A DNA stretch of 64,000 nt from Lepidodermella squamata. Lineage: Eukaryota; Animalia; Gastrotricha. The translations under genes were made by a program, and so were the position numbers. The stretch lies in the NCBI GenBank assembly GCA_047495785.1, contig JBLDXI010000042.1, forward strand, positions 5,022,001-5,086,000. The letters run 5' to 3'. Below, piece by piece: positions 7,523 through 45,000 of this stretch (its first letter is position 1; each line of letters begins with the position of its first letter). The notes beneath the pieces are model-generated. The model ran no database searches and had not been told where the DNA came from. It worked only from the letters and a program-made list of their open reading frames with translations.

Positions 7523-8589
7523 TAAAGCAAATAGATTTCGCTGACATCGCCGAACAACTCGGCCTTAGGCTTGTTAAGGAGGTCATTGCAAGCTACAGCC
7601 AACACTCCTTAGGTCGGATAATTTCACCACCGAATACAGCCTAAACCCGAGTATTCAATGGCATAACCTGACCTAAAAGTACTTCATAGCACTTGTTAAC
7701 CGTGGAGCATTCAGAATCCGAGCTGACTGCTGCCCTTATACCATTTCCAAATTTTGATGAGTTTTGTATGAATGCACTACGCACATACATTTTGTGAATG
7801 CCGCTCTAGTTTTGAGACCATCGTAAGCCGTGGACCTTGATCAACTGACTGAGAATGTCATTAGTCGAATTTTTATTCAAAAAAATGTTTTATTCACAAA
7901 ACACAAACCAAAATAAAGGATTGAATAAATAGCAGGAGACATAAGTCATGGATCAGTTTTAAAAAATTAATTGTATACATTACCGTCCTTTAATCAGTGA
8001 GGCTGTCATTAAACGTCTTCGTAAGTAGGCCACTCGCGAGCGAAACTGACAATTTTCTTTCAATTTTGGGTATGAAAATGGTCCAAAAATGCCTCGTTCT
8101 TAGTGGGGATCTATTTTTGTCATTTTGTCATTTTGAAGCCCGTGGGAAACCTGAAGGTTCGCACGAGTCCTATGGACACGGTTTTGGGAAACCTATGATG
8201 CCAAAACGGAAAAAAGTCCGGAGAAATATCGGAGCTTAGGCCAGTTAGATAGTGAGAACATTTGGAACTCTGCTGGCGAATTAGGCGCACCTAAATTTAT
8301 TTATAATTTTTCTAATTTTGAAATTTACCGTCCCGGCAAATGTCAAACAATTTCAATTTCAAAAGTTTCCGACCGCTTTTGTCTAGCAATAGCGCGTCTT
8401 CTCTATTTTGGCGCGCGATGAGCTTTGATTCATTTGAAAGCCAGCAAAAATTACAGGCGTATCCTTTTCATTCATTTTGGACGAGACAATTTTCGTAGAA
8501 ATGAGAGAAAAATGACCTTATTAAATGCTTTGGTCTAGGCACGCGTTTTTGTTTACTTTGCAGATGTTGACCTTTGCACCGCGAGATTT

Positions 8590-9060
8590 TGACAACATTA
8601 GAGGATGGATAGTTTCACATCTTAACATTTATCGCAGCCTAAATCTGCATAGAAAACGTCGACTTTTATCCCCGCAGCTTCACCGACCTGGGTCCGGGGT
8701 CCGGGTCAAAACCCCAAGTCTCCAAGTATGAAGTCAAGGATGAGGCTTTTGTCCTTTGGGATGGTCACGGATCTCACCTGACGTATGAGGTTTGTGAGTT
8801 AGTTGTGGAGCAAAACACCGAGCGAGCTAATTCGATTTCCACCTGGCTTAACGGACATGCTCCATTTAATTGATCTATCATGTTCCATCTAATGAGGGCT
8901 GGTGAGCGGTAATGCGGCGCAATAGATTCAGGGGCTTGACAGATCTGAAAAATGTTCCGGTCTTCCTGAAGCAGCTTATTGAAACACCTCTTTAGTGGCC
9001 TCACTCAATTTTGTGCTAGCAACGTTGCCGCTGGTTTCCGAGCTGGTGGTATCGAAATAG
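8590..9060 (+). mobile_element. Decayed pogo/Tigger (DDE_1) transposase fragment
   Basis: Reads AFVLWDGHGSHLTYEVCELVVEQN (DDE_1 LxxDGHxSH motif) at ~8745-8815 and NVAAGFRAGGI (NIxxGFRxxGI motif) at ~9020-9055, with stops in between. Confidence 0.65.
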
Positions 9061-12000
9061 TAAATACCGTATTTCTAGAAAGTATATCGTTTGCGACGCG
9101 CAAAAACAACCACTTTACTATTTACAGATTTTATGAGGAAAGTTCGTTCGATAGATGAAAAAATCGGTGCTCAAAAAGACTACCGTACTTCACCATTACG
9201 CTATGTGGCTAGAAGTACGATTGAATGAGTCATCTTTGTGGTTGTTTTGGCCGCAGTTAACGATGTATCCGCGCTACCTAAGACAACCCGACGAAAAAAT
9301 CATTAGTTCATAATTAACCCTAGCCTCGAAATTGACACACAGCTACTTTAATTCTAGCGATGCACGCGTTGAAAAAAATTGAATGCCTAAATAATAACGC
9401 ATGACCCTAATCACTAATTATCGCAATCGCTATCGCAATGATTGCAATGATGATGGTTTTTTTTGTAGGCCAAACTTAACTTTTTCACTTTTTCAATGAA
9501 TCGACAAATAAAATAATCCAAACGCGTCGTCTTGATATGAATTGCTCACGGCTTTTAGTGATTATTCGCAATTAAATAGTACATCCGTATACTATATCCC
9601 ACTCATTTATACAACCCGAATAAAAAATCACTCATAAATAATATAGCCCGTGGTAAATATTCGAGAAATACGGCAATTCCGTTTCATTCAAAGTCGAAAA
9701 TGTTCTCAAGCGCCTTGCCGCCAAAAAATCATAATCATCGTAGAGCTGTTCTGAAGTCAAATTTTCCGCTGAAACTGACCCTAATTCCGACATTTCTTCT
9801 GATATAACCCACTGGTAGTGTTTCTTATCGCTTGAAATAGTGTACGGCTTTGGGAAATGACTTAAATCCGACAAAGGGAGCTTGTAATTATGTGGTTCTT
9901 AGCCATTTAGAGCTTTGCCCTAATAGCTTATTTTTGATGAAGCATGCGGCGAAGCATGCGGCGAAGCAAAACCTCATTTCACCCTTAGCATGCGTTTGCA
10001 TGACAATGAGACAGCTCTGCACGTTCCGCGGATTTCAAACCTCAAAACTGAACGCGTTGCTATTCATAACTAAAGGATAGCCTTATTGCATTATTATTTT
10101 AACGTAACAATTAGTAAAAAAGCACGTTTTGACGAATTCGTCAGTCGTCCATTTTGCTTCTAGGCGATGATGTCACATCAGATGCTTTATAACGAACTTG
10201 ACGATTTTTTTACAAGCGAGCACACAAATGAGAGGAAAAGTCAGGAAAAGCTATTCTCATAGTACCGCGGGAGAGTGACAAGTACGGCCCACTTATAGGC
10301 AGTTTGAGGGGTAAATAAGAGCTCTGACTACCTCGCGCTTGGATTTCCGCAATTTTTCAATTAACAAAGTTGGGGGCCTTTCCTAAACTGCGCACGTCCT
10401 GCTGACCTGAAAAAATTACGCTATGGTGAATGAAGTGGAATAGCAGTCGTTTTGAGGGTGCACGGGTATTTTTTAATTGGAGAAGCTGCAGCTTGGGACA
10501 CGTGTATTGAGTTTCCTTTGTACATTGAAAACTTCAGAACATGGACAGTTTTTTGAATGAACAATGCATACCTACATTATTGAGCCGTGCAGAGCTATCA
10601 TCGCCCAAGAACAATCTTGGCACTTAACATAATATGACCTGTTGTAGACTGTCGCGTCGTAAGACACTGCGATCGCTGAAGCTGAATAAGTTCGACGACG
10701 CATCCTGACGTCATCAAAAGCATTGGAGCTTTGAAGCCCTCCCCCACCACATGGGGGAGGGCTTTTTTTCTCAAGCCTCATTTTTTAAGCGCCTACCTCT
10801 ATCCTCCTATATTTCGTTATCGGTTATCGATTTTTTGCAATCGATCGACAACAACGACAACTTCGACAAAATCATTCAAAAATTCACCAAAAATAGGAAA
10901 ATCACCCGAACTGGCTGAAAAAGGTTTGCTGGCATATTGAAATGACGGGCTATCGAATGACACCAAGCTCGAGGACGTGGGCCTTACAGTTGCTTAGATG
11001 CTGTTCAAGGGGGGTGTTTTACTACGTTATCTCGAAAAGGTAAAGGCGGGTTTGGAATTTTTTATTGTTGCCTCCGGCAAATTCATTTTTTTCGGCGCCA
11101 CTCATCTAGCAGCATTTTGACCACTTCACCGTTACCATTCCCAGCAGCGTATTGAAGAGGCGTGAACCGACCCGGGGCGTTTACGTCAGCGCCTGAGTCG
11201 ATCAAGGTTTTAACGGTATCACAGCTTCGGTTACAAGCTGTAGCCAATTGGAGTGGGGTGTAATCGACGAGCCGAGGCCAACCCCGGCAAAGTGAGTGTT
11301 TACTGTCCACAGATGAATGACGAGTATTGACGTCTAAAATATCGCGGAAAGTTTCGCCCAGCAGCTTTTTGACCTTGGGCGCGTTATCTTCGTAAATTGC
11401 CTCGCTAACCTTCGATTTCACCTGGCTCATGTAGACAGCTTTCTGCTTGGCTTGTTCCAACTCCTCAGCGTATCGAGCTTCGTCCCCAGCGTGGCGATAC
11501 TGGTAGATGGCTGTGTAGAGTCCGAAAGAGACAACAGGGAGAAGGAGGACGAACGAAGCGATCATTGCGATAATGCAGACCAATCGTCCGCATTTTCGCT
11601 GTTTTCGATCAATTTTCGGGTAGCTGGAAATTGGGTAAACGTCAGCTGGCTCTCCATTAAACTTCGAGGATCTCGGGCTTTGTTCAACCTCGGATTCTTC
11701 CAAGATATTTGCGTCATCGTCTTCCCCAAGTTTTCCGTAAAGTTTCGCTGGCATTTTATTGCATGCAAAACGTTTTCTAACAGAAGAAGATAGCAAAAAT
11801 GAAGATCTGCTCGAAGGCCTAGACTTTATTTTGACGAAATCGATATTGGTGTACCGACACGTTTACATGCGGTTACCTGGCAAGAAGACTCACCTGGTAT
11901 GTGTGATAAGGCGTTTAATTATTTACACGAGCAATAACATCATAGCTGCAAGTTTTGCGCTGTTTTTTGTCTAACACGTGAACGCACCTCAAATTCCAGC

Positions 12001-12177
12001 AATATCGATTTTATTACCGGGCTGAACACCGCCGACACATCTGTCATCCGAAAAGTTTGAATAAAAATGTTGGCGTGAAAAATCGAAGAGACATTTTGAA
12101 AATAAGATTAATCACTGAGGTCCCTAGCAAGAAAGTGGCAGTATGATTTCAAAAATATGAAGAGAATTGACAAATAA

Positions 12178-12968
12178 TCACAATTCAGTTACGGGAATAA
12201 TTTCGTTTTCATCGTCTTCGATCTCATCTGGCTCTTCCACAAGCTCTTCTTCCACTTCTTCAGCTTCAGCGTCTTCTTCTTCTATCACCGCTCCCTCGAG
12301 ATTTCGCCGATGCTCTGTCGATGCCTCTTCTTCTTCAGGTTCATTGTCCAAGTTTTCTGTTAACTCGATCAGATGCACTTTTTCGACGATAATGCAGAAG
12401 CGATCAGCAGACTTCTTCAATTCGCTTGAGATCATGCTGACAAAGGCCCCTTTTTGCTCGTCTGATTCCCTAAGACCTTTGAACCATGCCTCACCACAAT
12501 CCTATAGCGAAATAATGAAATTTGGTGGCGAGAATATTTCCAATTACGTACGTCTATCTTTGCCTTGAAGATATCGGCCATAAGGGACGGGAAAAGCCTT
12601 TGTTGATAGTCCAACCCGATCCACAGGAAAAGCTGCCGGAGTCGTTCCAGGCAAGGCCGGTAATGAATGCAAAATTCGAATTTGGCCCTGTTACCACTCT
12701 TGAACGTAAATTTGAGGCTGAGAAAGTATTTGCGTATGTTTGTCTCCATAATGATAGCTTTCTGGAAAAATGGCGTTTTGAAATGGTAACCCTCATCGTA
12801 GACGCCTTGCGTTTCTTTGTCGTAGAGGACGCCCTTGAATTTATCGAAGATCAGCCCGCGATGGCCAGGTGGCACATAGAATATTGAATCCATAGCGGTC
12901 ACTATTGTTCCGCCGACCAAGCCTCCTATCACGATACCCTTGGCTATCGGTCTCAGTATGCTGGACAT
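12178..12968 (-). CDS. Divergent prohibitin (SPFH/Band 7)-like protein with acidic C-terminal tail; exons 12552-12968 and 12178-12501, about 246 aa
   Basis: SIFYVPPGHRGLIFDKFKGV...VYDEGYHFKTPFFQKAII and IGLDYQQRLFPSL match prohibitin N-terminal motifs. A 50-bp GTACGT..CTATAG intron joins in frame to ISSELKKSADRFCIIVEKVHL. Confidence 0.75.
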
Positions 12969-13295
12969 GGCGAGTAAAACTGGTCAGCTTTCTCTTTTCG
13001 AATCAGTCAAATGAACCGTGACGGAGGCGTATAGTGCTATGGGTGGATCGATTTTTATCTATTATTCACACGCAGCGGTAACTCGCGAACAATGAAACGG
13101 CAAGAAAAAGATCGATCGCCAACATCAAGCCAAAAAATTTAATGATTCGCAACTAGTTCAATGTTCACAATACGTGTCACAATTGGAATCGAATACGATC
13201 AACGTTTCAAAGATTTCGGCATCGTAGATGCCTTAAAAAATGAGAAGGATTAATGTGATAAAAATGTTCTAGACATTTTCAGTTTTTGTTATCGT

Positions 13296-23069: not shown

Positions 23070-25174
23070 ATGGAACTGAGAAATGTGAGTGAAACCAATA
23101 TAGTAATTCCTATACCCCCTCAAAATGACTCAGAGTCAGACAAGCTTACTATCTCAAGTTGTCTTATTCGTTTCATCGAAAATAAGGGAATTACAGTAAG
23201 AATAGCGGCTCTGTGCCTATACGGAGCTTATTTCTTATACGCTATTGCTCGGTGTGTTGACTGCCCTCGACTAACAAGCGACTATTGGACGTTGGTCGGT
23301 GTAACTGCGCTCGGTTTGGGAATCGCGTTGAGTGAAACTATTGGCCGTTTCACGGGACGTTATTACGGGGATCAAATAGCTAGTTTAAAGAATTCATTTC
23401 TCTCCTTGCGGCAGAAAATTCTCGAATGCAAATTTTCCTCACCTCTGATTATTTGGATTGGGATTCCTGCGTTATGCATTTTATATGTCTCAATCGATGC
23501 TTTGATTGTTCGAGGAGATTGGTACTCCATGGTTTCTCTTGCTGGAGTCTGTTTCATCCTCGGAATATGCTACTTGCTCTCGCAACATAGGTCCTCTGTG
23601 AAAGCTAGGCCGACGATTGCAGGATTCGGGCTTCAATTTGTATTCGCAATTTTTGTACTCCGAGTGCCGATGGGTGAAGTTTTCTTCTCATGGCTTGGTG
23701 ACCAAGTGGTAAAATTCTTGAGAAACGGCCACGTCGGTGCCAAATTCGTCTGGCTGAATGCATTTACAAGCGGAGATTTTGCTTTTATGGTTCTGCCAGT
23801 GATACCATTCTTCGGAGCGGTCACTTCAGTTCTTTACTACTTGGGATGGATACAGAATGTGATAAAGATCCTAGCATCTTTGATGGAGAAGCTTACAGGA
23901 ACTACGGCGGGTGAAAGTACAACTTGCAGCGCAAATGTTTTTTTAGGAATGGTAACTTAGTTGGTGCAGTTACCTTCAATGCTTCATCTTTTAATTTCAG
24001 ACTGAAGCTCCGCTACTAATAAAACCATTTCTCCGACATATGACAAAATCTGAGTTGCACGCTGTAATGACAGGAGGGTTCGCGACCATTGCTGGGTCTT
24101 CAATGTAAGGCTTTTTATCTCTTCCCACTGCAACTCATTCTCCCCTTTTCAGAGGAGCCTTCATTGCCTTGGGGGTCGAGTCTAAACATCTCCTTGCTGC
24201 TAGCCTGATGGCAGCCCCAGGAGCACTTGCTCTATCCAAATTATCCTATCCCGAAACTGAGAAGACCAAACTTAGGGCTAAGGATGTGGAGAGTTTCCGA
24301 CGTACCCGTAGCAACAGTTTGAGTGAGGATGCGAAGCCAGGAAACATCTTGGAAGCAGCCTGTGAAGGGGCTTATAATGCCATGCCTATGGTTGGTGGTA
24401 TCATCGCAAATCTCATCGCAATAAATGCTATCCTTTCCTTCATCAATAACTTTATAAGTTGGCTTGGCGAACGAGTTGGTCTTGAACCGCCATTCATAGA
24501 CGAACCTTTCACTCTAGAATTCATTGCTTCCTACGTCTTCTGGCCTGTCGCGCTTTTACTAGGGGTTCCTTTGAATGACTGCAGACAAGTCGCCAAGTTA
24601 CTTGGCATCAAAATGTTTACGAACGAATTCGTTGCCTACATTAAAATGAGTGAAATGATGACGGCGAGGAGACAATATGAAAGCTACTACTGCAAATACG
24701 TTTTTCACAATTCGATACCTTCAGGCTTTGACTATAATAGCAATGTGACTCAGGTTGATTATGAAAGCACTTATGTTCTGTATGACGAATTCGGAAATTT
24801 TACGAATCGCCTGGCGCCCATTTTGCTCCATAATGGATCCTACTTGTTACCGGCTGTCAACGCAACTCTAATTCCTTTCATATCTGTGAGTTTACTTCAA
24901 GAGAAGTCCATCTGGTGATTCACTCAATTTTCAGAAAAGAGCCGAATCTTTAACTACTTATGCACTGTGTGGCTTTGCAAATCTGGCCTCCATTGGGATT
25001 CAAGTTGGAACAATTGCTCAAATGGTCCCATCGAAGAAGCAGGATGTTGCTAGCTTCGCTCTCAGAGCGATGTTAACCGCAACTGGGGTCAATTTTCTCA
25101 ACGCGGCAATAGCGGGGATGCTATTGAGCTACAGCGATCTGAGTTGGGAAGAAGCTTGCTCAAACAATCCTTGA
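23070..25174 (+). CDS. Concentrative nucleoside transporter (SLC28/CNT), full length, four exons
   Basis: [69 protein letters not shown]. Confidence 0.92.
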
Positions 25175-25289: not shown

Positions 25290-27653
25290 ATGAGTTTTGC
25301 GGGGAAAAACAAGCGAAGTGAGCCAGTACAATGTATCACTGTTCTCCATAATCCTGATGAATTTGGAGCCGAAAAAGGTGGAGTCAACTTTTCTAGGGCA
25401 GGCCGACTAATTTCGGCAGAGTATATTCCATTGTCGAAAGTGACGATTCTCTATGTGTTGTACCTGGCCTACGTCATATACAGTCTGCAGCATGAAAATA
25501 GCAGCGGAGACTACGAGAGAAACACGCTGATAGGATTGATGTGGTTTTTCACCCTCCTCTACCTGGTAAACTTATCTCTAAGTGGTTCTTCACCCGTCGC
25601 TAGAAAGTTCTTTCACCCAATCTGGAAACTTGTTGGAAATCGTCTCTACGAAAAAGTTAGATTGGCCAAAACCTCGATACGCCTTTCAGCATTATGGCCG
25701 ATCCTAACGAAACATCATACTTTGCTAGGCTTTTCGATCATGGCGGCTGTCTATCTCTTTTATTCAATACTGGATGCAGTTCTAGCGCGTAATGAACCGT
25801 TTTGCCTGGTACCACTCGCAGCAATTACTTTGATTATTGCAACTTGCTTCTTCACATCGGATGCTCGAAACAGAATCAACATTCGCTGCGTAACAATCGG
25901 AATCCTGCTTCAGTTCATTTTCGCAATAGTGGTCATTCGATGGCCAGTTGGACAAGCTGTTACGCAGTATTTGGGCGATCAAGTCGCAATTTTCATGGGT
26001 TATGCCCGGGCTGGAACAGCTTTTGTATGGCCAACTGCTGGTCTGAAAAATCGAGATGTCGTCTTCGCAGTTTTACCTGTTCTCCCGTTTTTCGCAGCAT
26101 TTGTATCGATGTTATACTATTTGGGGTGGATACAAAGTTTTATTCGAGTTTTAGCGGGTTTTATTGAGTTCCTGCTAGGAACGACGGCTGGAGAAAGTAC
26201 GTCATGCTGCGCGAATATCTTCCTAGGAATGACGGAGGCTCCTATGTTGATTCGACCCTTCCTATCGAAATTGACTAGATCTGAGCTTCATGCGGTTATG
26301 ACGGGAGGTTTTGGCACTATTGCTGGGTCCTTGATGGGAATTTTTATTGGATACGGAGTTGAGCCTCGTCATTTACTTGCTGCAAGTGTCATGTCAGCTC
26401 CTGCATCTTTGGCTCTAAGCAAGTTGGGTAAGCTTTGTAGATCTATTGGGATGTATCTCGGTAAGCTTTCGATCATTCAGTTTGTCCCGAAGTGGATGAA
26501 ACTTGCACAAGAGCTCAAGATATCGAGAAATTAACTGCTGCAAATGGCAAAGATGCAGATGGGAAACACAGAACCATTATTGAAGCTGCAGTTGAGGTAA
26601 AACTACTTCTGTTCGTCCTTCTCCTAGCTCTTTTCCGCTTGAAAAATGTCTGTGAAAATTTCTCACAGCTACAAAATTATCAAAATTTGACGACCTCAAG
26701 CCATTTTTGCATACTAAACCCTGCTATAGGGAGCATCTTCAGCTGTCCCTGTGGTCGCTAGTGTTATCGCAAATGTGATCGCTATCATTTCAATGCTGAA
26801 TCTCATCAACAGCCTTTTGTCCTGGTTTGGAAATCGAGCAGGTCTATCGCCTCCTGATGTCTTAGATGAGCCACTAAGCCTTGAGGTATCACTACAAAAC
26901 TAGGATGACCTCAGCATTGACGTTTTACCTTTTACATCAGGTGATGGCTTCGTACGTATTCTGGCCAATCGCTTTTGTCATCGGAGTTCCAGCGGCAGAG
27001 TGCAAAATTGTCGCTCGCCTCCTCGGCATTAAGATTTTCATCAACGAATTCGTGGCCTACAACAAGATGGGTGGCATGATTGAAGCCCGGCGTGCTTATG
27101 AGAGCTATTACTGTAATTTCATCTTCAACAACAAGACAACATCATTAGCTGGCCTCGAGCCAAGATTAATGTCACGAGACGTCTACTTTTTACCAGGACT
27201 TAACACGACACTCTCATGGCCTGTAATAAGCGTGAGCTAGTTTCATCTCGATTTTTCTCCTTATTTTTCGCCTGATCCCTGTTTAGCACCGAGCCGAGGC
27301 CGTAGCAACCTATGCGTTATGCGGTTCGGCTAACTTCGCCAGTACAGGTTGACATCTACGTCATTTTTACATCTGACATCACGTCATTTTTCCATACAAA
27401 CAGGCATACAAATTGGCAGCATAGGCTCCATGGCGCCGTCAACAAAACACGTATTAGCCGAGCTGGGATTACGCGCTATGCTAACAGGCACTGCGGTTAA
27501 TCTTATAAACGCCGCTACTGCCGGTGCGTTCAAAAACAAAACCTGTGGTTTTTTATGCATAATTGCATTACGTATACTTCCATAGGGTTGTTATTGAACT
27601 ACAACGAGCCTACGTGGCCAGTTATCTGCAACGGTGGCCTGCTATCGTTATAA
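25290..27653 (+). CDS. Concentrative nucleoside transporter (SLC28/CNT), full length, multi-exon
   Basis: LQFIFAIVVIRW, NIFLGMTEAP, VMTGGFGTIAGS, INEFVAY, YALCGSAN; short GT-AG introns. Confidence 0.92.
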
Positions 27654-28368
27654 GATGGCTCCTACATGCCTTTAATTGAGTCGAGCGCATGCTAACGTGT
27701 TGATGACGAGTAAAGTAATAACTCCGGCAACTTTAATGGTGTTTAGTACACATAATAAATGTCGTAAATTGTGGTGGGATTGTTGATAAGCTACTCCATC
27801 AAATCAGAGTAAGTACATTGGTAGCGGGCATTTAGCAAAATTCGTCCTAAATCTGAATATGACCTGGAACCCAGACAAAAGTTGTTCGAACCTTCTAAGT
27901 CATAAATTTTGGATAAATTCAGTTTGAGATCTGAGCACTCGCTACAATATAGTAAAATTTAAAGCAAAATCGACATCAATTTTTATTTGTTCCGCCCAAA
28001 ACGCGTTCATGTAGTATGTCTGTAACATAGTGATGTAAAAACAAGCGCAGGACACAAAACAGCAGTTTGGCAGTTAAATGATTCGTTCAAACAGTGACAG
28101 AGGAGAACATTTAGCAACTAACAATCTATTAGTTTGATATTGCTGCAAGTGCCTTTCGATAAGGTAAATTTTCGATGTAATAAACGGTTAAGTTACAAAA
28201 CAACAAAACACAGCCGTCCACGCTTTTTCCCCAGCAAAACTATATTTGATTATTGTTTGCGCAGCGCGACGGTTATAAATTATATAGTTATAACAAGCTC
28301 TATCAGCGAATGCCGATGTCAAGGGCGTAAAATGAGGAATAGCATCGCTAGCGTTAAGAAATTTGTCA

Positions 28369-30822
28369 TTAGTCTCTTTGGGCCTCCTTAATGCCATCCT
28401 TAGCCCGTTCGATGATGTTGCGCTTGCGGGCCTTGGCGGCTTCCTCATCGGCCTTCTTGCGGCTCTCCTCCTCATCCTGACCCTCAGCGTAGGTCGGGAC
28501 GAAGAATTCAGTGTCATCGAACAGCTTGGTCTTGTCAGGCTGGTCCCAGAACTTCTGAGTGATGAAAACACCGGTGATGGTGCCGCCGACGAGGGCGATG
28601 CCCAGGGTGACCAAGATACCGCCGATCTGGATACCGGCCTGGTGCTTGAAGGTGTAGTCGTGACCAGGTTCAACCCCAATGTCCTCGAGCTTGATCTCCT
28701 GAAGAACTCCAGGATTGTAGTGGTAATCCATGATGGTTCCATTGGACGGGGCCATGTGCGGGAAGACCGAGTACAGGCGTTTGTAAGAGCCATAACGCTC
28801 GACAGATCCAGAGCCGGCAACAATGGCTGAGACAATAGCCGAGTAAACTCCAGGCATACCGTGAAGGTTGCTAAAAAGATAAATAATTTTAGCTCGTCTC
28901 AAGACCTGATTGAGTAACTTACTTCACACCACAAGTATCGGTGAAACGATTCTTGGTGAGCCAAGGCTATTAAGGAATTAGGTCAGTAACGATTTCGGCG
29001 ATTCTATCAATGAAATGCTAACCGTAAGGTACTTGAAGCCAACAACGGAGAAAGCTCCGGCAACGCCTCCGATGAGGAGAGCTCCGAATGGGTGGACAAC
29101 CATGCAGGCCGAGGATCCAATGGCAACTCCACCAGCCAGGGTAGAGTTCTGAAGATGGGTGGTATCAAAGCGTCCCTTGTGGTCAAGAACCGCAGAAACA
29201 GCGTAGGCTGTGATGCAGGAAGAAACGATCGACAGGAAAGTGTTGACTACGGCACGATGACGCTCGATTCCAGTAGCTCCACCACCGTTGAAAGATGGCC
29301 AGTACATCCAGAGGAAGATGGTACCTTAATCAGACCAGAATTGAGTTGAACAGGGGATTCAGAGTTGGGTGGTTAAGGAAGCGGTTAGTTGGTTAGGCGG
29401 GATTACTTACCGAACATGGAGAAAAGTTCTGAGAGGTACGACTCGTACGTGTTCGAGCTAGCCTTTGCGGACTGGACAGACTTCGATGTAAGCACGCGAG
29501 CACAAGCTAGGCCGAAATAGGCGCCAAACGCGTGCACAGTCATAGAATCGCCGGAGTCGATTGTCTATTTTAATCAGGGGAACATTTTTTAGTCCATAGT
29601 CCTCAACAACGTAACCACTCGGTCTCGGCGCACACTCGCGCGCAGGGTGACACTAAAATCGCTTCTACTGTCATCTCGAGCCATCGACCCCGGCATTAAC
29701 AACAAATTATGACTGTGTACGCATTTTACGCCGCTCGCAAAGCTACCGCGGATCGAAGGCTGTCCGAGAGACACGCAAGGCCTGTTTTACCCCTCATAAC
29801 ATCTTCAAGCTAAGGTTAGAGCGCGGGACTTTACTACTGGCAGCCTTCATTACCGATCATGGTGAAAATCTCGGCCGAGTAAGAAGAGCCAAGCGCCTGA
29901 GACTTCTTCTTGGCCTCATCGAACGATTTGGTAGTGAGCGCGCGAGAGGCGCCGAGTCCGAAGAAAGCGCCAAATGCGTAGACCGTCATCGATCTTCCAG
30001 TGTCAATGGTCTTAACATTGCTTAGTTCTCAACTTCTATTCTCAGAATAGGATCAACAAATCAACTTACGCCCAAGTAATCGATGATGATCAAATCGTTG
30101 ACCATGAGAAGCACGACCTCAGGGACAGCCATAAGGATGAGCTGGAGAGGGCTGGCAAGACCGAGAACGGCGCCCATGGAGATCAGAATACCGGCGGTGC
30201 AGAACAGGGCATTCAAGCAGACTTCAATGTTGATCTGGATGCAACGGCCGTAAAGATTCGGCAAAATTGCGCCGCAGGTATCTTCATGATGTTCACCGTC
30301 AGCTCCATGGTTCACAGCGATTTGGAGGAGGAAGCCTTGCATAAGGATAGCCCATTCAATGACGAAAGCGCTGAGAAGGAAGTTGACGCAGACATCGAAA
30401 AGCTGAATCAAAATTCCTTTTAAATCATGATACGGATTGAGCAAGTAGAACTCACAGCATATCGGCAGAGGAAAGTCATAAGGAAGCCGAAGCCGATGAA
30501 GATCATGACGTTAACGTCCTGGAACATCGGATAGAAGACGTCGATGTTGTTGAAGTGGGTCTCCAACAGCTCCTCGCGCCTTGCCTCGTCACTGGTCGGG
30601 TCTGTTTCATTGTTAAACTCCTGGATGAGCTGTTTCGGCTCATACCGAACAAAAACTCCGAAGAGGATGATAACTAATCAATTCCCAATTTCAGACATTC
30701 CGAATAATCAAAAAACTAGGCAACTTACAGGTGAAATGAAGGAGAAGTAGGACGATGGTAAATTCGAAGCGCCGGCGGATGGGATGCGCATCTTTCGCCT
30801 CGACTTTCTGTTCATCGGCCAT
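28369..30822 (-). CDS. Rh-family ammonium transporter (SLC42/RhAG-RhCG-like) with a tandemly duplicated, mutually exclusive exon (29854-30010 or 29411-29564)
   Basis: [71 protein letters not shown]. Confidence 0.93.
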
Positions 30823-32327
30823 TTCTTAAAGTGGTCTCTTTAAAAAATGATCCTATACAACCAAAAGGTGGGGAAGTTAGCAGTTGTTGACCAGAACTAA
30901 GGAAGATTTTTTCACCCCAGAGCTTTATTAATAATTTATGCGTTTTATAATAAAGAAGAAACATGCGGTTGACACATGGCGCGTGCACGTTTCTTAATGG
31001 CTTCGACCGATGCGGGTGCACGCGGGTGAAGATTTTGCTAGAATGCAGCTGATGAGCAAGCAGTAGCCGCGGCCACTCCGGCATATGCGTTTAATAAGCG
31101 GTATAATCGCCACCGCGTGGTGTGTTTACGTGAGAGAGCCGCAACGGCAGCATGTCACCGAAGCGGCACCTCGGCTCCTCAATTAAATAGCTGTAAATAC
31201 ACGCGTTTTTTTTCAACCCCCAACCGCACTTGCTAGGTTCAGATCTGAGTTAGAGCTAGTTAGTCGAGTTATTCAGGCGCCATAAAAGCAACGGCGCCGC
31301 TGCTGGTGTGGTGTGGTGGGGTGAGATGCTTGCTAACGTTGTCATCTACTACACTGGTCAAGGCTCCGAACATGCTGGAATAAATAACGAGAAAGCAATC
31401 GTCTTAGGCGCCGCTTTTGCACCTGTTGCCCGTCACGGCCACGGTGAACCTGTACGTATGAATGATCACTATGAGTGATTGCAACTTCACTACTGCTGCT
31501 ATGTTGGAAAGCTAATAATAATATGACATCGTGCATTCGATATCGATTAAATATTTCGACTTTGACTATTCTTAAATCGCCAATGTCAACTGAATTCCTA
31601 ATCAAATGCCAGTACTATCAAACTTCTATTCAATACCAGTTTCTACAGTTGTTGAAGGTTTTCGATTACTTTGTAGATTCAAACTGTGTAACCAGAACCT
31701 ATGTCTTCTTTCCAAAAGCGTTGCGTAACCAGCTCTAAAACCTGGTCAAAATAATTCTCGAAGCTTGCTCTCAAAACCAACTTTTTTAAATGCAGCTCTT
31801 TCTTTTGGCTATGATTCTGCATGAAGATGAATTATTCTAGCCGTTCTGGACAAAAACTGTACGCTTAATTTAATCAGTCAATAACGAAAAACTTGATTTG
31901 GACACTAACATAATCTGTGGTGTGTTTGATATGAGATGAAATTGAATCGAATCTATGACAACAACTCAACAATAGAGTCATCTTAACGGCGGATGCTTTA
32001 GCCTCGTTTTTGTTTCGTAAATGATGAACGCTCGTAAATGTTCAGCCGATTTTTACCAGTTTCTATTTCTATTTCTATTTTCCTACTATTAAAAAAATAG
32101 CTTTCGACTCGACTTCGGCGTCACATTGATTATTGATTGAAGCTCTGATCCAGGTATTGTGATGAAGATCTCAGATTTCAACCTTCTGATCTGAAGCCCG
32201 AAGAATTTCTGCGAAGTAAGCGAGCTCCTGGCTTGCAGCGCTAATCTTGGGATCAGTTTCTATCCTCATCTAAAAACCTTGTTATCCTCTCAAATTCATG
32301 TCTGTTTTCCAATTTTAGGCCTTTAAA

Positions 32328-34434
32328 ATGACTGGGCAAGAGGTTCACGAACGTCGCGGTCGTCACAAGTCGACGGATGAAGGTCCGAAGCCGTACCAGA
32401 AGTCGCGCCGCATTCAGCTCCCTACAGTTGTCCTGCTGATGCACGCCACCTTCATCATTCTGTTCGGCGTCTTCGTCCGCTACACGCCCCATCAGTCAAT
32501 CGCGCCGTGGAATCCGGCTGAGTTGACCGATGGAACAGCTGCGGAGAAGGAGCAGCTCGATTTTGAAACCACAGCCAAATTCGACGCTGAAAATGGCTTG
32601 ATCAACTTGCAATTCATCGATGTCTACTACCCTAGTAAGTCATTCATAGCTTGCTTCACCAATCGAAACGTTACATTTTTGCGTAGTGTATGAGGATGTT
32701 CAAGTCATGGTTTTTATCGGCTTCGGTTTCCTTATCGCCTTCATGAAGTTTTTCTGCCTCACCGCCGTTTGCATGAATTACTTGCTGGCCTGCCTTTGCG
32801 TTGAATGGGCCATTCTTATGAACGGCTGGTTCACCTGGTCCCGTCGGCCGCGCGAGACCATCGGCGACACATGTGGATGGGGCATGAGCAACAATCACGG
32901 TCATTGCTCCCCACTCGACATCCGAAGGTAATTGAGCCAAAAAACGTGTCTTAAAATCAAGTCGTCTACAATGTTCAAGGGGCGATTTTACAGAATTTCT
33001 TATGAGGTGACCTGGTAAACTAGTTAAAATAGTTACATATTATAGATTCCCCGAATGGAAATCAAGTCGCCTACACATTTTTGCCGGGTTTCTTTAGCTT
33101 TAGCAATCTTTTCAGTATCACTCTTACCGATAATCAAGTCGTCTATAGTTTGATTGTTCTGAATCTTAAGAGATATGAACACTCTCTTTGTTATCCAGCA
33201 TCACAGGTGCCCTCTTTACGAGCTCAACCGTCCTCATTTCGATGGGCGTCCTGCTCGGCAAAATCTCGCCAACCCAGATGGCTATCAACTCTCTGCTGGA
33301 AATCACCCTAGCAGCCGTTAATCGCTGGATCATCGTTGATTTACTTGAAGCCACTGACTCTGGTCACGCCATGACTGTTCACGCCTTCGGCGCTTTCTGG
33401 GGACTTGCCGTTTCAGCAATTGTCTGGCCGAAGAAGAAGAAGCTCGCGGAAGCTCCCGGCGCTAAGGAGGCTTACGCCAACGAGCTTTTCGTCTTCATTG
33501 GAACTCTCTTCCTCTTCGTTTTCTGGCCATCTTGGAACGCGTTCGAAGACACAGGAATTATGCGCCATCGAGCGGTTATTAACACATTCCTCTCCATCAT
33601 TTCATCCTGCATCACCACATACGCTCTCTCAGCGGCTCTGGACAAAAAGGGCCGTTTCACCGTCCAGCACCTTCAAAACGCTACTTTAGCCGGTGGAGTT
33701 GGTATCGGCTCGATTGCTAACGGCGTTGTCCACCCTTTCGGAGCTCTTATCATCGGAATGATGGCTGGAGTTATTTCAGTCGTTGGCTACCAATGGATCA
33801 CCCCTGGTCTCAACAGACTCGGCCTCCACGACTCGGCTGGCATCAACAACCTCCACGGAATCCCCGGCATTTACGCTTCAGTGGTTTCGGCAATTGTAGC
33901 TGGTGCTGTAACAGCCAAGCGAGCTGGTTCCTTGCAAGCGTAAGTTTCACTCAACCGTGACGGGTACTTTGAGTTATTTCTAACCTTCTTAGGGAGTTTG
34001 CCATTTTCCCAGCTATGGCTGACAATGAAACTCGCGCCGATATGACGAACCGCGAGCTTTACGTCGACCCCTTGGCGATGCAGGGAAACTTCCCAGAGTT
34101 CGACCGCAGTCAAACTCGCCAGGGCGGCATGCAGTTCGTCGGTATTTTGATCACGATTGCTATTTCAGTCGCTGGCGGCTTGCTGACGGGTGTCATCCTG
34201 CGTTTCATCCCTGGCCTCGACCAGCCAGATGATGAAAACCTTGGCAAGGACAGCGAGTTCTTCTACCCGCATTGGGAGCAGTTGACCGGGTCTGAGGACG
34301 CGCCCCTCCACTCGAAATCCAGCATGACCAACATGCGTGCGGCGACGCTGGATGACGACATCGTCGATGAAGGAGAAAAGGCCGCCCCGTCGCAGCAGCA
34401 GCACGGCGACGAGTTGGAGATGAAGAAAATGTAA
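32328..34434 (+). CDS. Rh-family ammonium transporter, second paralogue, divergently transcribed from the first
   Basis: [56 protein letters not shown]. Both pore histidines are present. Confidence 0.93.
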
Positions 34435-42078: not shown

Positions 42079-45000
42079 CTACAACATTGCACCGGCTGCT
42101 GTGAGAATGTCTATGGTCTTTTGCTTGTCTTCTTCCGACACATCGTCATCGCAAGTCTGGGCAATTAGCAGAGCTGTCCAGCCCTTCGACGGAACTCTGT
42201 AATTGACATCAGCGCCCAGTTCACGTATCAGAACATCTACAACAGCGTGGCGACCTTTGAATGATGCTGCCATAAGTACAGAGCGCCATTTCTGAGTTGG
42301 AGGATCTAGTAGTCTTCCAAGTTTATGTGACATTTGATTTAAAACCTCTGAGGCGAAGTCTAGAGAATTTAGGTTGGCGTTAAACCGCGAAGCTAGAAGT
42401 CTCACGATTTCAACATGGCCATCGTAAGCTGCAATGTGTAAAGGCGTTGTCCCATCTTCATCTTCTGAGTTGACATCAGCTCCGCAGTTCGCTACAAGGA
42501 GATTAACAATTTCCGAATTCCCTGAATATGAAGCAGCATGAAGAGTTGTCCAACCGTTAATTGCAGCCAAGTCGGTGCTTGCGCTGAACAACCCGGCTAA
42601 AATTCTGACGATTTCCGCGTGCCCATTCATAGCAGCGATAATCATAGGCGTCTCGCCATTCTTATTCCGGGAATTAACGTCGCAATGAAATTCCTCGGCC
42701 AGTAATTTGATGATCTCGGCGTGTCCATTCGCAGCTGCAATGTGCAACAGCGTTTCACCGTTTTCCAAAGTTGCATTGACGTCGCACATTGATTCACTTG
42801 CAGCTAAGATTCTGACGATTTCCACGTGTCCATAACCAGCAGCGAAGTGCATCGGCGTCCTACCGCCTTCTCCAGATGCATTAACGTCGCACTTTAAGTC
42901 CACAACTAACAATCTGACGATTTCAACGTATCCATTCTGAGAAGCAACGTGTAAAGGTGTCCAGCCATTTTTATCTCGCGCATTCACGTCGCAGTTAAAT
43001 TCTCGCGCTAGCAATCGGACGATTTCTACACGTTCATTCCAAACAGCGATAAACATAGGCGTCGCGCCATTCTTATTCAGGGAATTAACATCGCAATGAA
43101 ATTCCGCAGCCAGTAATTTGATGATCTCGGCGTGTCCATTCGCAGCTGCAATGTGCAACAGCGTTTCACCGTTTTTCAAAGTTGCATTAACGTCGCACCT
43201 GAACTTGTCTGCTAACATTCTAACGATTGCCACATGCCCATTCTGAACAGCGAAGTGCGCAGGCGTCCAACCCCCTTCACCACGGGCATCAACATCGCAC
43301 ATTGATTCACTTGCAGCTAAGATTCTGACGATTTCCACGTGTCCATAACCAGCAGCGAAGTGCATCGGCGTCCTACCGCCTTCTCCAGATGCATTAACGT
43401 CGCACTTTAAGTCCACAACTAACAATCTGACGATTTCAACGTATCCATTCTGAGAAGCAACGTGTAAAGGTGTCCAGCCATTTTTATCTCGCGCATTCAC
43501 GTCGCAGTTAAATTCTCGCGCTAGCAATCGGACGATTTCTACACGTTCATTCAAAACAGCGATAAACATAGGTGTCGCGCCAGTTTCATCAGGCGAATCA
43601 GCGTTGCAGTTGAAATCCTTTGCTAACATTCTTGCAATTTCTGCGTTTCCGTCCTCAGCAGCAATATGCAATGCCGTATACCCGCCTTCCACTTTGGCAT
43701 CAACGTCGCAATTCAATTCTCCTGCTAAACGTCTGATTACGTTTGCGTGTCCGTTTTGAACAGCAACGTGCAATGGCGTCAGGCGTTTTTTGCCCAGTGC
43801 GTTAACATCGCACTTATAGTCTGCTACTAACATTCTGACAATTTCCTCTTGTCCATTCAGAGCAGCAACGTGCAAAGGTATCACGTCATCCATATTACGA
43901 GCATAAATGTTAGCATTGCATGCCCCTGCCAGCAGCCTGACGATTTCTGCGTTTCCATTCTTAGCGGCAATGTGCAAAGGCGTCCAGCCACCTTTACCAG
44001 GAAGATTAACTTCGCCTTTGAATTCCTTTGCTAAAATCTCGACGATTTTCGCGTGTCCATCCTGAGCAGCGATGAGCAACGGCGTTGCCCCATTCAGAGT
44101 ACGTGCATTTACGTCGCAATGATTTCTCCCCGCTAAAATTCGAACGATTTGTGTGTGGCCATCCTGGGCAGCGTAATGCAATGGCGTCCAGAGATTTTTA
44201 ACCTGGGAATTAACGTTTCCATTGAATTTCTCTACCAACAATCTGACGACTTCCACGTGTCCGTTTTGAGCAGCAATGTGCAATGCCGTCCTGCCATCGT
44301 CCAGAGCGGCTTCAACGTCGCAATTAGACTGCCCAGACAATACTTCGACGATTTTAACATGTCCACCCTGAGCGGCGAGGTACAAAGGCGTGGCACCATG
44401 CATTTCCCGAGCGTTAATATTGCCCTTAAACTCTTCCGCTAGCATCCTGACAATATCGGTCTGTCCTTCCTGAGCAGCTACGTGCAATGGCGTCGCGCCA
44501 TGTTTATCCGGAGCATTGACGTCATACCTGGCCTCGGCTAGCATTCTTACAATTCCCGCATGTCCATTCTGAGCAGCGATGAAAAGAGCGGTGGCGCCTT
44601 CCTGATCTGATGATTCCACACTGACATTAAGTTCCCGTGCGAGCAATCTGACGACTTCAGTGTGTCCGCGTTCAGCAGCGACGTGAAGAGGAGTTAGGCC
44701 AATTTCGGGCTGAACTTCAACCTCGCCGCCAAAATCCTCCGCTAGCATCCTCACAATTTCCGAGTGCCCATTTAGAGCAGCAATCAACAAAGGCGTAGCA
44801 TTGCTTTTGTTCCTCGCGTTAACATTGCAGTTGGATTTCCCTGCTAGAATTCTGACGATCTCCGCGTGTCCATTCTGAGCAGCAATGTGCATTGGCGTCC
44901 AGCCATCTTCATCTTGCGCATTAAGGTCTGCCTCGGGAATCTCTGCTAGCATACTGACAATTTCAGTATTTCCATTGTGAGCGGAAATGTGTAACGGTGT

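Follow-up and report, generated by a model that had tools for sequence, protein, structure and literature searches.

Can a single ammonium transporter gene supply two kinds of pore, one with and one without a conserved histidine, by the choice of one exon? This question is raised by a locus of Lepidodermella squamata (contig JBLDXI010000042.1), of which a stretch of 64,000 nt was analysed; this stretch is called the window here, and coordinates are positions within it. It contains a gene for an Rh50-type ammonium transporter (gene 1; 28369-30822, minus strand) with seven exon slots, the fourth of which is present in two versions, exons 4a and 4b. We find that each mRNA has either 4a or 4b, and we put the probability that the two form a real, old and functional pair of mutually exclusive exons at roughly 0.8.

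Each mRNA carries one of two versions of exon 4

The exons of gene 1 were built from splice sites and homology, and all lie on the minus strand. Constant exons are located at 30822-30729, 30673-30456, 30402-30070, 29324-29023, 28966-28923 and 28870-28369. The fourth slot is occupied by exon 4a (29854-30010, 157 nt), an alternative version with Tyr at a pore position, which aligns with residues ~175-228 of RhCG, and by exon 4b (29411-29564, 154 nt), the alternative with the canonical His. An intron of 289 nt (29565-29853) separates the two, compared with 52-86 nt for the other introns of the gene. Every intron has GT..AG ends; the donor of 4a (GTAATG) is weaker than the GTAAGT of the neighbouring donors. 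The family assignment is supported by a match of PF00909 (Ammonium_transp) to exon 5 at E 3e-26, by human RhAG and RhCG as the closest solved structures to the gene 1 protein, and by the alignment of each of the exons 4a and 4b to RhCG, RhAG and NeRh50.

The identity between exons 4a and 4b is 56% at the protein and 59% at the DNA level, which identifies them as homologous and not as a chance pair. They are arranged in tandem, have nearly equal lengths, and share a start in phase 0 and an end in phase 1, the pattern of mutually exclusive exons. With 4a alone the frame of gene 1 is open over 549 aa, and with 4b alone over 548 aa, whereas inclusion of both leads to a stop at codon 303 and omission of both to a stop at codon 241. 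An initial annotation, made from the letters of the window, had described two tandem homologous exons with an AG acceptor and a GT donor each, and had argued that including both or neither shifts the frame. The translations are exactly as it gave them, and the open frames and stops bear out its argument.

Two sequencing runs, X1 and X2, were aligned over the window positions 28350-30850. X1 consists of assembled contigs of one public data set; its label as RNA is only a guess, yet it behaves as RNA, because its contigs skip six introns, the ends of which read CT..AC on the plus strand, and because contig depth is zero across 29610-29777, inside the intron between 4a and 4b. The introns spliced out in X1 are all six of the gene 1 introns, with GT..AG ends on the minus strand.

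The junctions in X1 connect either version of exon 4 to its constant neighbours. A contig of 198 nt comprises 28 nt of exon 3, the entire exon 4a and 13 nt of exon 5, with the joint 30010|30070 on one side and, on the other, ten letters past 29851 that are the reverse complement of the exon 5 start. Exon 4b is joined to exon 5 at 29411|29324, another contig terminates precisely at the acceptor of 4b (29564), and in a loose string of 27 letters the last letters of exon 3 run into the first of 4b. Neither a joint of 4a with 4b nor one of exon 3 with exon 5 was found among the X1 contigs, a level at which rare forms could escape. The mutually exclusive splicing that the initial annotation had predicted is thus seen in the RNA, as junctions exon 3-4a-exon 5, 4b-exon 5 and exon 3-4b, with no 4a-4b joint. 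Contig depths of 200 for 4a and 247 for 4b, next to 328-475 for the constant exons, fit a roughly equal use of both versions, with the reservation that contig depth is a poor measure.

X2 is a DNA run, in which the introns are covered and two haplotypes are present. One of its contigs (819 nt) crosses 4b, the intron and 4a and has only four differences from the window, all of them intronic; this independent evidence rules out that the tandem arrangement was produced by the assembly. Collapsed alleles are likewise excluded, by this contig and by the DNA identity of 59%. Over the aligned region one X2 haplotype matches the window almost completely, the divergence of the other being ~2-5%. The differences in exon 7 are mostly spaced by three bases, which suggests synonymous changes.

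Between 4a and 4b the synonymous sites are saturated (pS 0.75), with pN at 0.30. It follows that the duplication is old and that both copies have been constrained by purifying selection.

The inverted exon copy in the intron

The intron between the two versions contains an inverted, degenerate and non-coding copy of exon 4b (29683-29806, minus strand; inverted repeats I1, I2 and I3). A second, short element (I4; 29619-29643, minus strand) is antisense to positions 29938-29961 of 4a, with 23 of 25 aligned columns matching and one gap. The inverted copy is predicted to pair with 29421-29561 in 89 base pairs, which involves nearly all of exon 4b. Its core (29708-29732) shows complementarity of 84% to 4b, over 25 nt, and of 83% to 4a (29967-29989), over 23 nt, and around the His/Tyr codon its sequence is a mixture of both exons. 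The intronic complementarity to each alternative exon exceeds chance (≤1/1000 shuffles for either): the local alignment of the inverted copy scores better than 1000 of 1000 shuffles, and the score of the second element is reached by one in 1000. Duplex z scores against shuffles are about -7 for 4b and about -2 for 4a.

In folding predictions, the intron together with 4b reaches -163.3 kcal/mol, compared with -137.9 +/- 5.5 for shuffled sequences (z -4.58), and the minimum-energy and centroid structures agree. The whole region from 4a to 4b reaches z -3.23, and the intron alone folds no better than its shuffles (z 0.09).

Exon clusters controlled by competing RNA pairing are known from Dscam, 14-3-3 xi and MRP of insects. 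Gene 1 resembles these in its tandem homologous exons, of which one is included, and in an intronic element with complementarity to a sequence that is associated with each of them. It differs in that the partner is the coding core of the exon and the element an inverted copy of the exon, and the predicted pairing would mask the exon instead of bringing it near.

As a hypothesis drawn from these predicted structures, the inverted copy may take part in exon choice. It would fold onto 4b and mask it or, alternatively, mask 4a through the shared core; the spliceosome would then see only one alternative exon at a time, and the frame rule would remove mistakes. An exon accompanied by its own inverted copy is a compact candidate for how RNA pairing might enforce such a choice. 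Steric hindrance between splice sites, considered as another cause of exclusivity, is excluded by the 289 nt between the exons.

We regard the chances as even that the inverted copy has no such role and is a neutral relic of a fold-back duplication, with exclusivity arising from the frame rule and nonsense-mediated decay, or from protein factors. A relic of this kind is consistent with the equally good folding of the sense and antisense strands, with the small number of G-U pairs in the stem (8/89) and with the use of 4b in RNA despite the predicted stem. It is harder to reconcile with age. A neutral copy as old as the exon duplication should have decayed, yet 89 positions of 4b still pair; because the duplication is old and the copy still matches, the copy is either younger or maintained by selection. 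Two further details argue against neutrality, namely the hybrid core that matches both exons and the sole haplotype difference within the stem (29782, X2), which turns a predicted G-U into an A-U pair. A-to-I editing of the predicted double strand was also looked for, and the exon 4b contig of X1 displays no differences.

A residue switch in the pore

The twin-His motif is a hallmark of all Amt/Mep/Rh proteins. In the alignment to RhCG, on whose 479-aa sequence the residue numbering was checked, the Asp of the TID in exon 4 corresponds to D177, and the His of 4b (CAC, 29532-29534) or the Tyr of 4a (TAC, 29978-29980) to H185, the first twin-His residue. Three residues past the conserved Asp, at the position of G180, 4b has Asp (GAT, 29547-29549) and 4a has Arg (AGA, 29993-29995), all four codons being on the minus strand. 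F130, D177, F235, D336 and H344 are kept in both isoforms, which therefore differ at the checked pore positions in H185 only, and beside D177 at the G180 position. The motif (H185 and H344) is complete in the 4b isoform, and the 4a isoform combines Tyr at H185 with His at H344. Outside the 52-residue exon the isoforms are identical; within it there are ~23 differences. Both the equation of this His with the first twin-His residue and the reversal of charge from Asp to Arg had been put forward in the initial annotation, and the alignment agrees, locating the reversal at the G180 position.

Such a switch is rare. All 245 other Rh proteins compared have His at H185. At the G180 position, 243 of them have G, E, D or A, one has Lys and none has Arg, so that a basic residue three positions past the Asp occurs in 1/245. 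None of the annotated isoforms of Rh genes from seven other animals differs in the exon 4 segment. A protein search of a representative library with exon 4a returned four weak matches, none of them with Tyr, and a word search returned no candidates. No description of mutually exclusive exons in an Rh or Amt gene turned up in full-text searches of the literature, in line with the earlier remark that none was known to its author for Rh genes.

What exactly the twin-His motif does is still debated. In AmtB, H168 (the equivalent of H185) bridges two proton-carrying water wires, one of which is stabilised by D160. RhCE and RhD are without the motif; RhCE occurs in a heterotrimer with two RhAG, and its pore is blocked by a short hydrophobic constriction. 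In the sensor KsAmt5 the pore is occluded by bulky aromatic residues. The residue of human RhD and RhCE at the H185 position is presumably also Tyr, and no paper that we found states it.

Judging from the presence of D177, H185, H344, F130 and F235, the 4b isoform is a canonical subunit. In the 4a isoform, the combination of a bulky Tyr at H185 and a permanent positive charge close to the Asp would be expected to eliminate proton-coupled ammonium transport or to alter it strongly. By analogy with the proteins above we infer that the Tyr/Arg isoform does not perform this transport and would be a closed or altered subunit, like human RhCE, which may mix with the His isoform. Since Rh proteins form trimers, in human red cells of two RhAG and one RhCE, mixed trimers of His and Tyr isoforms are conceivable, in which the ratio of splicing would determine conductance or selectivity. 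KsAmt5 is a parallel in that bulky aromatic side chains appear to block transport while the fold is kept. It is, however, bacterial, fused to a signalling domain and retains the twin-His motif, and the resemblance is an analogy only.

A serious alternative, to which we give somewhat less than even chances, is that the Tyr isoform conducts by another mechanism or conducts another substrate, along a hydrophobic path for NH3 or CO2 without a proton relay, or as a less selective channel. Substitutions of the twin-His residues in AmtB and Mep2 keep ammonium transport and change its mechanism and selectivity, and the fungal Mep1/3 naturally differ from Mep2 at the first His (His or Glu). In addition, RhCE is blocked only by its short constriction, the authors leaving a role in transport open, and in the Tyr isoform itself neither the second His nor the Phe gate nor either Asp is altered. 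The substitutions tested in AmtB and Mep2 were, however, Ala, Asp and Glu, none of them a bulky aromatic like those that occlude KsAmt5, and the added Arg beside D177 would probably disturb the recruitment of ammonium. Fungal Mep2 and Mep1/Mep3 resemble gene 1 in the natural variation of the first twin-His residue and in forming two functional subfamilies, which differ in transport mechanism, within one organism, but they are encoded by separate genes, carry an acidic Glu and not an aromatic Tyr, and involve no splicing.

Closer to the proposed products of gene 1 is the human Rh trimer, in which a canonical twin-His subunit is combined with a homologous subunit that lacks the pore histidine. 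Human RhAG and RhD/RhCE are nevertheless products of separate genes, differ over their whole length, and the motif is absent altogether from RhD/RhCE. Gene 1, by contrast, encodes both subunits; their difference is confined to the 52-residue exon and leaves the second His, the Phe gate and the Asp residues unchanged. The loss of the whole motif as in RhCE/RhD is therefore not found in the 4a isoform, where only the first His is replaced and H344 remains. In a tree without vertebrate Rh30 sequences, the Tyr exon and the whole of gene 1 group with their own lineage and not with vertebrate RhCG. Descent of the Tyr version from vertebrate Rh30 thus appears unlikely, and an independent origin likely.

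The locus of a relative and the neighbouring genes

A syntenic locus of a related animal (L002) was reached through one of the weak matches of the representative search (P0002), in ENA metagenome contigs of up to 32.7 kb. It contains, in this order, an orthologue of the paralogous Rh gene that neighbours gene 1 (R2, on the opposite strand), two tandem Rh genes (R1a and R1b, L002 positions 8578-13043) and a concentrative nucleoside transporter gene. The window has the matching order of gene 2, gene 1 and then nucleoside transporter genes, and local gene order is conserved between the two. The single gene with alternative exons in the window thus corresponds to a pair of genes in the relative, of which one has His and the other does not. 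The segment of R1a resembles 4b and has His at H185; in R1b, H185 corresponds to Phe and G180 to Lys. The initial annotation had proposed to look for the duplicated exon in related genomes. The only relative found keeps a His and a Phe version, as two tandem genes and not as a pair of exons.

The introns differ among these genes. In R1a, the three introns that lie between exons 3 and 6 are absent. R1b still has the one that precedes exon 4, but all three between exons 4 and 7 are missing. The two genes have in common an additional intron, within the equivalent of exon 3, that is absent from gene 1. The stretch before the second His reads DNGAAVNVHG in R1b, compared with DTCGVNNLHG in the others.

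In the exon-4 tree, 4a groups with R1b (SH-aLRT 93, UFBoot 97) and 4b with R1a (76/79), and orthology of 4a with the Phe gene of the relative is favoured, at a level that is not significant. The best tree of the constant part places gene 1 (W1) as ((W1, R1b), R1a), with the other two orders not rejected by the approximately unbiased (AU) test (p 0.12 and 0.086). Either the exon pair came first and each isoform later received a gene of its own in the relative, or gene 1 arose by the merger of two old genes. Under both readings, the non-His version predates the split of the two animals, unless it arose twice with the same accompanying basic residue. It is a general pattern that a gene with alternative exons in one species is matched by duplicated genes in another. 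Window and relative fit this pattern, and the direction of change is not fixed by the trees, in which all three branching orders are unrejected. Scans of JGI metagenomes with exon 4a and with an alignment of the clade-specific C-terminal part found no relatives, and word searches with the genes of the relative returned only general Rh proteins of ≤45% identity, from a collection in which the Rh proteins of the window are absent.

Two findings lend weight to the idea of an altered subunit, namely that the Tyr exon is old and constrained and that the relative has a separate Phe gene. That 4a is a decaying duplicate or splicing noise, so that only the His isoform matters, is very improbable and already largely refuted: the weak 4a donor and the lack of anything close to exon 4a in protein collections or JGI metagenomes would fit it, but the frame and splice sites of 4a are intact, a spliced exon 3-4a-exon 5 contig exists at a depth similar to that of the 4b contig, pN of 0.30 against saturated pS speaks for long purifying selection, and the relative keeps a full gene (R1b) with the same kind of change.

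Taken to its full extent, the account would be that one gene encodes a conducting, Rh50-like and a closed, Rh30-like subunit, chosen by an RNA toggle that derives from the exon's inverted copy, with the composition of the trimer set by splicing, and that the same solution was reached independently in vertebrates and, as two genes, in the relative. With all its parts together we consider this account unlikely. Several points also weigh against the main reading, that of an old and functional exon pair with the proposed effects on pore and splicing. The effect of the Tyr is argued by analogy only. On the RNA side, the junction of exon 3 with 4b is a single loose end of 27 letters, oddly placed at 30189, and the evidence consists of contigs of one run guessed to be RNA, from which ratios, tissues and rare double inclusion cannot be read. 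The fold of 4a with the intron is not significant (z -1.34), and the hairpin folds equally well on the antisense strand (z -2.93), which makes it an inverted repeat at the DNA level that bears no strand-specific mark of selection on the RNA. Finally, the pairing of 4a with R1b is better by 13.5 log-likelihood units, yet its alternatives are not rejected (AU p 0.14-0.15, 54 columns).

If the full account were true, splicing would set the composition of Rh trimers, and hence permeability to ammonium, CO2 or cations, cell by cell. The locus is a natural and minimal experiment, in which one gene gives two proteins identical but for one 52-residue exon, and the most striking of the ~23 differences are the exchanges of the pore His for Tyr and of Asp for Arg beside D177. 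A comparison of the isoforms would bear on the Rh30-like subunit as a recurring design for tuning trimers and on the unexplained function of human RhD/RhCE. It would also add a pore residue of a transporter to the short list of catalytic and pore residues that are switched by alternative exons.

Gene 2 (W2; 32328-34434, plus strand), the paralogous Rh gene, has four exons and lies head to head with gene 1. It has only His at H185, and the segment homologous to exon 4 is part of one long exon (33209-33937), which is matched by PF00909 at E 2.9e-42 and matches RhAG and RhCG at E ~1e-64. Its orthologue occupies the same place in the locus of the relative. Both gene 2 and this orthologue have Trp for Phe at the second position of the Phe gate (RhCG F235: WPSWN) and His at the G180 position.

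On the other side, two tandem concentrative nucleoside transporter genes (Nucleos_tra2; 25734-27147 and 23454-25162, plus strand) are convergent with gene 1. Segments coding for ankyrin repeats are located at 11101-11652 and 43639-45000 (both minus strand), and a similar ankyrin gene is found near the Rh cluster in the contig of the relative.

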